Shown here piece by piece: positions 7,780 through 63,677 of a stretch of DNA of 64,000 nt. Every line of letters starts with the position of its first letter. Position 1 is the stretch's first letter. This DNA comes from Octopus bimaculoides (lineage: Eukaryota). Location of the stretch: positions 70,864,577-70,928,576 of the forward strand of contig NC_068990.1 in assembly GCF_001194135.2 (NCBI RefSeq). The letters are read 5' to 3'. The translations under genes were made by a program, and so were the position numbers. The notes under the pieces were generated by a model. The model did no database searches and was not told the DNA's origin. It saw nothing but the letters and a program-made list of their open reading frames with translations.

Positions 7780-7833
7780 CTGTCGAGCTATGTTGCATCT
7801 AATTCCTAAAGAATTGAGGCAAACTATGGCCAT
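7780..7833 (-). CDS. Putative alternative first coding exon C of host gene (MAIVCLNSLGIRCNIARQ); whole exon 7780-7847
   Basis: Minus strand: acceptor ttttttcttccttatatctgtcag, 68-nt exon, TAA directly before ATG, donor CAG|gtaggt in phase 0. Confidence 0.55.
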
Positions 7834-8037
7834 TTACCAAACAATATCTGACAGATATAAGGAAGAAAAAATACATACAGGTATGTATGGGAAAATATTA
7901 ATCCAGGTACACATTTCAGTTTGTTTCCATTCAGCATAATTGGAAAATATAGATGTTGAAAGCAACCAATGATGTAGTTAATTGGCAGTGATCTGATGAA
8001 TACAAGTTGCACTGCCATGTCCTGCATCACAGCTTAC

Positions 8038-8225
8038 AGTGCCACATATGGCTACAAATAAAAAATGTTTGGAATACAAGCAGAATTAGTTCCTAAATAA
8101 AGCTTTCAACCTACTTGACTGACAGTTCAGCAATCAACATTATTTTATCTGGCTATAAATCCCTAAGCTAAAGATGGCATAGCCAGTAAGCAATGCTTTT
8201 GGTGACTGCACAGCTCACCAATCAG
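8038..8225 (-). promoter_or_regulatory. Candidate core promoter and 5'UTR exon for exon C
   Basis: CCAAT (8218-8222), weak TATA-like TTTATA (~8155), Inr-like TCAGTC (8117-8122), then donor |gtaagc at 8037, 190 nt from the 7847 acceptor. Motif-based only. Confidence 0.3.
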
Positions 8226-8874
8226 CATAGCGCTACTGTCTTTTGTAGGCCAAACAATCAAGAACTACATTATTGATGATTAGTGAGAGCAACAATATAC
8301 TTCATACACTATTTAAAACTTTCTTTATCCTTTGTTATTTTAAGCCATAAATTAAATAATACCAATAACATACCTTTATTTGTTACAAAGGAAATTATTG
8401 CAATATAATTTAAAGTTTGCATAATATAATTTATTGAGATTCTTTTTATTTTATCCTAAATGAATTTAGTAAATGAAATAAAATAACACAAACTATAAAT
8501 AACTCTAACATAATATAATACCGGAATGGTAAACTCTAAAAAAATAGATTTTACAATAGCACCAATGTAGCATTTCTCATATTTTCTATAGTAAATTAAT
8601 ACCAGTCATTCTTAAAACTATTTCAATATAGTATATATTTACTCTTATTCATTTTTAAAGTGTTTAACTGATGAATATTTTAAAAATAGCTTCTACTTTA
8701 AGATACTTTTTCATATATAAAACTTACTATCTCATATAAGACACTATACACCAGCTATACACAATACAACCTATAACACATACCTAGGCAGATTGCAGCC
8801 TCAACAGCTAGTTTGTAGTTGCAGACATCAAGCTGACCAGTTAGAGGATCTAGCTTCACCAAAGTGGTGATATA

Positions 8875-9175
8875 TATCATCATTATCATTTAACATCTGT
8901 TTTCCATGCTGACATGGGTTGGATAGCTTGACAGGAGCTGGCAAAGCCAAAGGTCACACCAGGTTCTATAGCCTGTTTTGGCTTGGTTTCTACAGTTGGA
9001 CGCCCTTCCTAGTACCAACCACTTTATAGTGTGTACTGGATGCTTTTTACATGGTACCATCACCTGTTCTTTTACATGGCATTATCATCAGCCCTTTTTT
9101 ACGTGGCACCATCACTAGTGCTTTTTACATGGTACCAGCACAAACACCAATGCTTTTTACATGGCACTTTGGTTT
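8875..9175 (-). mobile_element. RTE 3'-tail / SINE-tail fragment with tandemly repeated GGTGCCAYGTAAAAAGCAC unit
   Basis: Similar to the 3' end of the RTE copy at 36716-36918 (ccaacccatg..agcatggaaa..gttaaatgatgatg). Confidence 0.7.
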
Positions 9176-9349
9176 TAGGATACCAAATGCCAATGCTTTA
9201 TTTTTGTGTGTATGTGAATGATAGAGAAACAGAGAGAGAGAGAGAGGGAGAGAGAGAGAGAGAGAGAGAGAGAGAGAGAGAGTATCTACAACACTCCAGA
9301 ATGGCATTGAAAGGAATCATACAGGACCCATTGTGAATGCAGTCAAAAG

Positions 9350-9625
9350 CCAATATTACCAACATCTAAACCTATTCAGGTCAGCAACAAGATAAACACT
9401 ATTTTCTTGTCTAAATTTGTCTGGAAACTCAGGGGCCACCGATTAAAAAGCATATCGCAATGTCATAGAACATCATTGGCGAAGTTACAGATCCCAAAAC
9501 TGTAGACTAAGCCTTACTGAAAAGTTGCAGATCTTAAAACAGCAATATTAATTAACACTTAGCTGGAAATCAGAGATATTGTCTAATTGTTATCATAGGA
9601 GAAAATCACTCCTGCAAAGCTTCCA
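9350..9625 (+). mobile_element. Penelope-like element fragment (region C-terminal to the GIY-YIG core)
   Basis: Translates with frameshifts to SNKINTIFLSKFVWKLR, CRLSLTEKLQIL, LSWKSEILSNCYHRRKSLL, matching the C..CL.EK..I / LN.RSE....C.H motifs of Penelope ORFs. Confidence 0.7.
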
Positions 9626-61199: not shown

Positions 61200-61680
61200 T
61201 TGTTATCATCATTGTTATCATCATGGTCCTCATCATTGCTTTAACTGCCAGTTTTCTATACTTGCATGGGTTAGACAAAGGCAGATATTTCTACAGTTGG
61301 ATGCTTTTTGTTACCAAACCTGACATGTTTCCAAGTAAGGAAATATTTCCTGTACACCTTTGAAAGATGAACAGCTCATTGAACAGACATATTTTTATAG
61401 AGGTTTGTTAACAAACGACATTTGTATGAGGGTTACTTTATTTACACTTAGTGTGCACATGTCAAGACAAGGAGACAGAAACACATACATGTGGTGTGTA
61501 TGTGTGTGCATGTACACACATAATGGGCTTCTTAGAGTTTCCGTGTACCAAATTTTACTCACAAAGCAATGGGCAACATGTGGCTTTAGTAAAAGATACT
61601 GACTGATAGTGTCCACTTGACAGGAATGAACCCAGAGCCAAATGATTCCAAAGTGGTCTTCTTAATGACACATCTATGCC
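61200..61680 (-). mobile_element. Decayed tRNA/CORE-type SINE with RTE-like tail
   Basis: Reverse complement of the 14700-15095 architecture, ending in (CAT)n-like repeats. Confidence 0.6.
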
Positions 61681-62089
61681 TGCACCTCTGTACTACTCCC
61701 AGTATTTCAGGTGTTTCTTATGTCTCACAGTTCATAGGTTAAAGTGGCGGTATAACAATTTCCAATGCTACAAGCATATTTCTACAAATCTCACCAGCCA
61801 AATTGAAACAATATAAAAAAACAAAAAAAAATAATTTCTCAAGAGAGGAATGTTTTTGCATGTTTGGATATACATAAATATGTGTGTGTGAAATGTGTGT
61901 GTGTGTGTTTGTATTTGTTTTTATTGAAACTGCAAGTTTGTCTCACGAGTTTCACACTACTGCAATCTTTAGGTAAAAACAGTGATCACAATGATGAAAC
62001 TCAAATCATGAGAGAAACCCAATTTCAGTTACAATGAAAATAAAATTTATAGCCTCTACAACATGTATTGAACACTCTTCTCTCATTCA

Positions 62090-62175
62090 TCCACACACAC
62101 ACACACACACACACACACACACACACACACACACACATATATATATATATATATATATATATATATATATATACA
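62090..62175. repeat. (CA)n-(TA)n microsatellite
   Basis: Seen directly. Confidence 0.95.
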
Positions 62176-63294
62176 TACAATGATAATTATTTATTACTGT
62201 CTTTAGATGCATAGTGGTGACATTTCAGATCCAAGCAGGCACACCTGATGACCACATGTTTAAATGGTTTGAAATATGCATCCTCATTGTTAAATAGCAG
62301 CACACCGTTCTTTCATGCAATTGTCAAGAACAGACAGATGCAGTTGTTAAATAAGGTTGACCAAGATCATTATTTGCCTTGGCTAAAAAAATACCTCGAG
62401 CAGAAATTGAACTAAAAGCCTTTGGATTAATATTAATCCAACAGTTTAAACATGATCTAACTCATCCCACTCTCTGTCACTCACATACTAAATAAGTCAA
62501 AGTAGTAGTCATACAGACAGACAGCAGAACAAACTTAGAGATTAACATACAGAAAGTCAGACATCAACAGATAGATACACAGGCAGAATTTCATAGAAGT
62601 AGACAAAGACATTAACAATCAGACAGATTGATGGCTGACTGGCTGGCTGGTTGGTTGGTTGGTTGGTTGGTTGGTTGGTTGGCTGGTTGGATAATCAGTT
62701 ACATACAAACTGATAGGTAATACTCAGAAACACACTCAGATATATAAGACATGCACAAGATAGTGAGACTCTCTCTCTCTGTCTCTGTCTGTCTGTCTCT
62801 CTCTCTCACACACACACACACACAGTCAGACAGGTACACTCTGAAAGGCTACCTAACATAGGTGTGATGTCCTGAAATGACATACCAAAATGTTATTTTA
62901 CCGACATCATTCACTAAGTTATTTCCCTTGGCTCATATTTTCTGATCATACAAATTATTAAAAGCAGGCTCAAGTTTAACTATTCTTTACTGATGAGGTC
63001 CAATAAGACTTAAACATGTTCCTTACCTGAAAATGAATATCAGATATTTTCCTAAGTATGTAAATTAATATTTTTGGGAAATTTATTCTGAATTTCTAAT
63101 TAAAACAACTACTTATAAGTTTCATTTTCTTTATTCAACAAACAGGCAGTGGTTCAGTACATTACTCCTTAACGGATTTATCTAAATTCATACCATTAGC
63201 CATCTCCAGTTATTTCACTTAATTTAGAACTTTTAACAAGCATTAAAGTCATTTTCTTTCATAAATTTAATTGTTAAGTAATAAATATGCTTAC

Positions 63295-63417
63295 CGTTTC
63301 AGATTCACTATGTCTGAAATGCAAACGTTTCTCTGGGGTAGATAACCTTTCTCTACTCCTAGCAGGAGATGCCTTCTGATCAGAAAGTTTGTCTTCAACA
63401 CTGTCAGTTAGAGACAT
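63295..63417 (-). CDS. Putative first coding exon A of host gene (MSLTDSVEDKLSDQKASPARSRERLSTPEKRLHFRHSESET); whole exon 63295-63458
   Basis: Strong acceptor ttttcttttctttattttcag, 41-nt UTR with in-frame stop, acaaccATG context, 41 open codons, donor ACG|gtaagc in phase 0. Confidence 0.75.
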
Positions 63418-63677
63418 GGTTGTTATTATTGCTCGTAATCAAAAATATTTCCACATAACTGAAAATAAAGAAAAGAAAAATATATATATTATGTATGTAT
63501 ATTGGTTTCAAATTTTGGCACAATGCCAACAATTTCGGGGGAGGAGGGGGTCGATTACATTAACCCCAATGTTCAACTGGTGCTTATTTTATCAACCTCA
63601 AAAGAATGAAAGGCAAGGTTAACCTTGACAGAATTTGAACTCTGAACATAAAGACAAAGTATATATATATATATATA

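Follow-up and report, generated by a model that had tools for sequence, protein, structure and literature searches.

PDE4/dunce, PKG/foraging, AMPK-gamma and KChIP are genes whose several promoters lead into alternative N-terminal coding exons. A sequence-only reading of Octopus bimaculoides contig NC_068990.1 (positions 70,864,577 to 70,928,576, a stretch of 64,000 nucleotides that is called the window below) had placed a minus-strand locus in this class. At least three promoters were proposed, giving mutually exclusive first coding exons (E1 extended by E1b, E2, and E3) whose splicing would converge on a single phase-0 acceptor beyond the left end of the window. The features concerned are listed here in positions of the window.

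63418..63458, minus strand: 5' untranslated part of E1, with its acceptor at 63459-63460, a 5-codon uORF and an in-frame TGA
63295..63417, minus strand: coding part of E1, ATG at 63417, 41 codons encoding MSLTDSVEDKLSDQKASPARSRERLSTPEKRLHFRHSESET, phase-0 donor ACG/gtaagc
48654..63294, minus strand: E1-E1b intron, 14,641 nt and gap-free, its junction implied by the model of UniProt entry A0A0L8I8V6
48588..48653, minus strand: E1b, 66 nt, 22 codons encoding DLPGDVDSVFAEGDKENSLTTQ, open in frame 0 and symmetric (phase 0/0)
48525..48587, minus strand: read-through of the E1b donor, VSIFHSAWVTLSYSAHCTVL and a stop codon, which ends the public 83-aa model
23562..23687, minus strand: candidate exon E2, ATG at 23648, 29 codons, phase-0 donor GCT/gtatgt
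7780..7847, minus strand: candidate exon E3, 68 nt, ATG at 7833, 18 codons, phase-0 donor CAG/gtaggt

The coordinates, AG acceptors and phase-0 GT donors were as claimed for E1, E1b, E2 and E3, and so were the ATGs and upstream in-frame stops of E1, E2 and E3. The agreement in phase carries no weight, because the sites had been selected for phase 0, and agreement of this kind is meaningless once it has been used for selection. The locus resembles the multi-promoter genes in that E1 appears to be a short polar start-codon exon with a phase-0 end, a long way 5' of the remaining gene, and in that the symmetric 66-nt E1b could act as a cassette. It differs from them in that one N-terminus is supported in the O. 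bimaculoides window and the common acceptor lies outside view: where a stack would call for at least two 5' exons that exclude one another, each with a validated start, only E1 was independently supported. A further difference is that Pfam scans of minus-strand ORFs of at least 38 aa across 172-48653 and of the E1+E1b peptide recognized no UCR/PDEase, cNMP-binding/kinase, CBS or EF-hand sequence; the shared exons had been proposed to lie outside the window, and membership in the PDE4, PKG, AMPK-gamma or KChIP family is a guess. The reading that we favor, with a probability of roughly 0.7, is that a single minus-strand O. bimaculoides gene begins its coding sequence with the two exons E1 and E1b, and that neither E2 nor E3 supplies an alternative N-terminus. 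The locus would then be an ordinary 5' coding exon pair of a large-intron gene, and a multi-promoter stack is unsupported.

First, the structure of E1 was analyzed. Its acceptor has a polypyrimidine/AG form (tttattttcag/TTATG), and its peptide is identical (100%) to residues 1-41 of UniProt A0A0L8I8V6_OCTBM. The amino-acid composition of E1 lies at the 0.9th percentile of background ORFs and is thus atypical; the 41-residue N-terminus that it encodes is polar and probably disordered. Since the start codon of E1 stands behind a conserved acceptor, the promoter and one or more non-coding exons would be expected further right. The arrangement points to an upstream non-coding exon beyond 63458, which probably lies beyond the window as well.

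The sequence-only reading had named conservation of the peptides in related species as a check. Orthologues of E1 were found on two Logan contigs, L002 and L001, which come from other cephalopod assemblies, and E2 and E3 had no protein match. A pyrimidine tract and an AG acceptor about 41-46 nt 5' of the ATG were present in all three species (O. bimaculoides, L001 and L002), and in-frame stops occurred upstream of the E1 ATG in every species compared. In L002, E1 is about 93% identical, in comparison with 82% across the 927-nt alignment, and six of the seven codons that differ are synonymous. In L001, the alignable part consists of the 3' end of E1 and GTAAGC only, where the similarity stops. 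The last 16 codons of E1 differ there by 8 nt in seven codons, all seven of them synonymous, and the last 16 residues (STPEKRLHFRHSESET) are unchanged in this distant cephalopod; random changes in these codons would be expected to be synonymous in 21% of cases (rough p about 2e-5). The E1 donor is kept in 3/3 species, and the read-through tails behind it are wholly different (VSIFIT, VSIVITKHLKL, VSYINF...). For E1, the synonymous excess and the conservation that ends at the donor indicate purifying selection in other cephalopods and support E1 as a genuine start-codon exon. They mark E1 as a conserved cephalopod coding exon, which could anchor a corrected gene model.

The extension of E1 by E1b was borne out by a public gene model, which joins the two at exactly the boundaries that had been claimed. 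The 63-aa product of E1 and E1b matches the start of A0A0L8I8V6_OCTBM, an 83-aa fragment from Octopus bimaculoides, with 100% identity over its full length, and residues 42-63 of that entry are the E1b peptide; this one gene model is the basis of the junction. E1b has no ATG, its acceptor is weak and its donor is good (CAA/gtaagt). Its hydrophobic content is low (6th percentile of ORF windows from the background). What is supported in the proposal, E1 with E1b, already stands in public annotation. A0A0L8I8V6 differs from the proposed gene in that its last 20 codons read into the intron, and it has no name, domain, downstream exons, E2 or E3. Its tail is the translation of the sequence 3' of the GTAAGT donor of E1b, and an intron-derived tail usually marks a gene model as truncated. 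Most likely, 48525..48587 is intron sequence and the 83-aa model is truncated. The entry may then be regarded as a truncated piece from the 5' end of a larger octopus gene, a correction of small practical value. The introns of this gene would be very large and filled with repeats, and the phase-0 donor of E1b would join further coding exons, most likely beyond the left edge of the window; downstream coding exons of E1b were not recognizable in the remaining 48.5 kb.

The peptides were also searched against protein databases. E2 and E3 had no match in 5.8 billion proteins, and a search with the E2, E3 and E1b peptides gave A0A0L8I8V6 as its sole match, through E1b. These databases were clustered at 90% or 50% identity, so that a representative may stand in for complete isoforms distinguished by nothing but a short N-terminus, and the lack of a match for E2 and E3 carries little weight. 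A HMMER search of A0A0L8I8V6 against 1.84 billion representatives recovered the entry itself, the E1 orthologue P0003 and a spurious repetitive coiled-coil protein, P0005. No full-length protein with the E1+E1b N-terminus was found among these representatives, and the N-terminus gave no gene name. A composite query of 4,622 aa, made of minus-strand exon-like ORFs and all ORFs around E1b, E2 and E3, had no matches; it missed even A0A0L8I8V6, with which it shares 42 identical residues, and this negative is therefore uninformative. Composite Pfam scans of minus-strand ORFs of at least 38 aa across 172-48653 showed no domain, and a spiked mariner control was recovered (E = 4e-5). The E1+E1b peptide had no Pfam or PDB match, a plus-strand exon-like ORF had no PDB sequence match, and no Rfam family was found in the window.

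We also analyzed the two remaining candidate exons, which the favored reading takes as ATG-bearing open stretches between splice-like motifs that would have arisen by chance in an AT-rich, intron-rich region of 64 kb. Both resemble the pseudo-exons of long AT-rich introns in their splice-like motifs, short incidental ORFs, background composition and lack of homologues. E3 differs from such pseudo-exons in that both of its sites score unusually well (acceptor 4.7, donor 11.4), comparable to E1 and among the best in the window. It is unlikely that E3 and not E2 is a real exon of the gene, either a non-coding 5' exon or a poison or cassette exon, in which the 18-codon ORF is incidental. At a donor score of at least 8 and an acceptor score of at least 4.5, phase 0 of the minus strand holds only E1 and E3, and the other five strand and phase classes hold one candidate of at least 18 codons (minus strand, phase 1). 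Simulated exons with an ATG and an ORF reached a donor score of at least 11 and an acceptor score of at least 4.5 at a rate of 0.02 per strand, but these thresholds, like the preceding pair, were chosen after E3 had been seen. Under slightly looser thresholds the minus strand has about 40 pairings of acceptor and donor and the plus strand about 23 (overlaps counted separately), and the 68 nt of E3 contain frame-0 stops, so translation would end if it were included after E1b. As an N-terminus, E3 found no backing: it has only 18 codons, no homologue or annotation, and a hydrophobic content (0.50) at the 67th percentile of background. A T stands at position -3 of its ATG, and its frame stays open for 34 codons beyond the donor. 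Apart from its strong splice-like signals E3 is without support, and it is probably not coding.

That E1 and E1b form a self-contained small gene or a conserved small ORF, with either the 83-aa model being essentially right or E1 alone encoding a micropeptide, and with no splicing to anything beyond, seems to us rather improbable. The sole public model does stop 20 codons past E1b, the 48.5 kb downstream yielded no exon or domain, and the 1.84 billion representatives offered no longer protein with this N-terminus. However, consensus GTAAG donors end both E1 and E1b, the E1 donor is the point kept in three species while the tails beyond it diverge completely, and the tail of the public model has the mark of truncation described above. 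A polar, probably disordered peptide would also suit an N-terminal extension, as the favored reading holds. STPEKRLHFRHSESET carries a proline-directed S/T-P-x-K site and a basophilic R-H-S site. A quite unlikely extension of this observation is that STPEKRLHFRHSESET could serve as a regulatory N-terminal module, specific to octopods or cephalopods, on an otherwise conserved gene, that E3 could be a second genuine start, and that the locus could be an unannotated multi-promoter one.

The case for E2 as an N-terminus did not hold. Its donor score is weak (3.9, in comparison with 8.7-11.4 for E1, E1b and E3), and an out-of-frame ATG at 23664 overlaps its proposed start. Candidates of the same grade in signal quality and length numbered 14 in phase 0 of the real minus strand and 12-16 in each other phase and on the plus strand, and second-order Markov simulations gave 13 +/- 4 per strand. 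The amino-acid composition of E2 lies at the 42nd percentile of background ORFs and is thus typical. E2 is best read as a chance pseudo-exon, and it is unsupported. Of the three N-termini proposed, the one formed by E1 (with E1b) is supported by UniProt identity and conservation, and those of E2 and E3 are not, as they have no match and a background composition. The three-promoter arrangement is very improbable: each of E1, E2 and E3 combines an ATG and a stop before it with an acceptor and a phase-0 GT donor, E3 scores well and clustering could hide isoforms, but the phase was a selection criterion, E2-grade candidates are equally frequent elsewhere, E2 and E3 have no homologue or annotation, and each would need upstream non-coding exons, of which no sign was seen. 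A caution that follows is that splice-flanked ATG ORFs arise by the dozen in AT-rich, intron-dominated sequence and call for care before they are read as alternative first exons.

Assembly gaps were also considered. No N runs occur inside E1, E1b, E2 or E3 or within 270 nt of them, and the interval between E2 and E3 is gap-free. Five assembly gaps lie between E1b and E2, so the linkage of E1 and E1b to E2 and E3 rests on scaffolding; the frame across these gaps is irrelevant, because the proposed exon model puts every gap between exons. The possibility that any exon lies inside an intra-window repeat was rejected (0/4). A KEN-box degron is defined by K-E-N within disordered sequence and by conservation of the motif across orthologues; K-E-N itself is present in E1b (GDKENSL), as a candidate.

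The peptide encoded by E1 and E1b, two of four exon-like segments proposed by the sequence-only reading, was compared with public protein models. Minus-strand reading and translation reproduced the coordinates and sequence features of all four:

63295-63458, minus strand, 164 nt: E1; acceptor tttattttcag, ATG at 63417, 41 codons, donor ACG/gtaagc
48588-48653, minus strand, 66 nt: E1b; open in frame 0, donor CAA/gtaagt
23562-23687, minus strand: E2; ATG at 23648, 29 codons, donor GCT/gtatgt
7780-7847, minus strand: E3; ATG at 7833, 18 codons, donor CAG/gtaggt

The full 63-aa E1+E1b peptide was 100% identical to the Octopus bimaculoides model A0A0L8I8V6_OCTBM in UniProt ('uncharacterized protein', 83 aa). 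This match identifies the window as O. bimaculoides DNA, and a public gene model thus already contains the splice of E1 to E1b. The junction in this model is exactly the E1 donor and E1b acceptor predicted earlier, which upholds the joining of E1 to the symmetric 66-nt E1b. Past E1b the model continues for 20 codons through the GTAAGT donor and then stops; it looks like a truncated 5' fragment model, and E1 and E1b are already represented by it.

E1 was also found in other cephalopods. The search with the E1+E1b peptide returned three short ORFs on Logan contigs (P0002-P0004), each consisting of E1 plus read-through of its donor. The contig L002 (run SRR11869385) was 82% identical to the window over 927 nt including intron and about 93% identical in the exon, where 7 codons differed, 6 of them synonymously. 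The contig L001 (run ERR12921337) was much more distant, and its BLASTN alignment covered the last 55 nt only, that is, the E1 3' end and GTAAGC. The last 16 residues of its peptide, STPEKRLHFRHSESET, were the same as those of E1, and all 8 nucleotide differences in these 16 codons were synonymous, against 21% expected for random single changes there (rough binomial p ~2e-5). Before its ATG, E1 carries a 5-codon uORF and an in-frame TGA. The pyrimidine tract and AG some 41-46 nt ahead of the ATG, the in-frame stops preceding it and the purine at -3 were kept in 3/3 species, while the tails from donor read-through were wholly different between species. The synonymous excess, the kept acceptor and stops and the differing tails show E1 to be a real internal coding exon that bears the start codon, is under purifying selection and has a functional donor, in agreement with its description as an ATG exon with acceptor, upstream stop and GT donor.

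The composition of E1b is unlike that of non-coding ORFs: with 23% hydrophobic residues it ranks at the 6th percentile among background windows of equal length, and E1 ranks at the 0.9th. We consider E1b rather likely to be real, the public model being its sole direct support; its weak acceptor and symmetric 66-nt length would suit a cassette exon. The data support E1 and E1b as an ordinary object, the two opening coding exons of an octopus gene with large introns.

E2 and E3 had been taken, with E1, as alternative N-terminal exons from at least three promoters, and this stack was unsupported, E2 being chance-like and E3 weak. Splice sites were scored on a crude scale of our own (donors by a generic metazoan matrix, acceptors by their pyrimidine tract), and every candidate that combined an acceptor, an ATG preceded by a stop, an open frame and a donor was counted. 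The E2 donor scored 3.9 versus 8.7-11.4 for E1, E1b and E3. At the thresholds and length of E2 there were 14 minus-strand phase-0 candidates; each remaining phase and the plus strand held 12-16, and second-order Markov simulations gave 13 +/- 4. An out-of-frame ATG 16 nt upstream overlaps the proposed E2 start. E2 is indistinguishable from chance.

E3 has good splice sites, yet it is an open but weak candidate for a real alternative start. With donor >=8 and acceptor >=4.5, cut-offs chosen post hoc with E3 already known, E1 and E3 were the only minus-strand phase-0 candidates, with one more elsewhere; with slightly looser thresholds, acceptors and donors paired about 40 times on the minus strand and about 23 times on the plus, overlapping pairs each being counted. 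E3 has only 18 codons and a T at -3, and its frame stays open for 34 codons beyond the donor. The composition of E2 (42nd percentile) and E3 (67th) was background-like. Neither peptide had a match among 5.8 billion proteins, a weak negative because the database is clustered at 90% identity and may hide isoforms that share everything but a short N-terminus. The shared phase 0 carries no weight, since it was a selection criterion.

A HMMER search of A0A0L8I8V6_OCTBM against 1.84 billion representatives yielded no full-length protein that carries this N-terminus, and the E1+E1b peptide had no match in Pfam or PDB. All minus-strand stop-to-stop ORFs of at least 38 aa in 172-48653, concatenated, contained no Pfam domain; a mariner transposase ORF spiked into one composite came back at E = 4e-5, which shows that the scan works with some sensitivity loss. 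A further composite protein search gave zero matches and missed A0A0L8I8V6_OCTBM itself, and was hence uninformative. With neither domain nor full-length protein found, the downstream exons are not recognizable in the window and probably lie left of it, as had been supposed; the families named for the gene (PDE4, PKG, AMPK-gamma, KChIP) are guesses.

The window has seven N runs, none inside the four segments; on the downstream side, the closest are 273 nt from the E3 donor and 594 nt from that of E1b. Neither the intron joining E1 to E1b nor the E2-E3 interval contains a gap. Between E1b and E2 there are five gaps, most of them bordering simple repeats (AT, poly-A or the trinucleotide AAT) or a transposon fragment, and it is through scaffold joins that E1/E1b are physically linked to E2/E3. 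Under the proposed exon model all gaps fall between exons, so frame across them is irrelevant.

None of the four segments (0/4) lies within an intra-window repeat. Among exon-like minus-strand ORFs, 35/151 occurred a second time at another place in the window, which indicates that several interspersed repeat families fill the region from E3 to E1b. The repeats and transposon fragments were as follows:

8.8-9.1k, 10.1k, 14.2-14.8k, 18.7-18.9k, 22.6-22.9k, 30.3k, 33.4-34.0k, 35.8-36.8k, 37.6-37.8k and 39.1k, minus strand: duplicated exon-like ORFs
11902-12261, plus strand: mariner/Tc1-type transposase fragment (PF01359 Transposase_1, E = 3.7e-7, 30.4 bits versus cutoff 24)
63499-63656, 29736-29894 and 29963-30107: three copies of a dispersed ~158-nt repeat, 74-77% identity
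5393-7558, 25632-25679, 46058-46106, 47995-48030 and 62114-62179: long (AT)n and (TATACA)n microsatellites

The repeat copy at 63499-63656 lies upstream of E1 and stops 40 nt short of its acceptor; it may be a lineage-specific insertion beside E1, because the alignment with the sister-species contig L002 stops at 63489. ORF fragments at 35964-36353 (plus), 55808-56272 (minus) and 56528-57224, with the sequences MLHGSETWAVTAEDIHKL..., ...HTSQIDYILARKRERW...QHRLVVSDFRIR, presumably resemble, judged by eye, LINE reverse-transcriptase/endonuclease ends; none had a significant match in Pfam, and the first is interrupted by the gap 36354-36590. Several of the microsatellite tracts adjoin assembly gaps and probably explain the breaks. 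On the plus strand, an exon-like segment at 214-322, possibly to 408, with strong splice sites (acceptor 4.7, donor 12.7 on the crude scale), was without match in Pfam and PDB; it has a protein-like open frame, TELIVKQLFRPRAAPIKQIIDQKVLVETVRDGKKKR, and may be either an exon belonging to a plus-strand gene or the remnant of a transposon.
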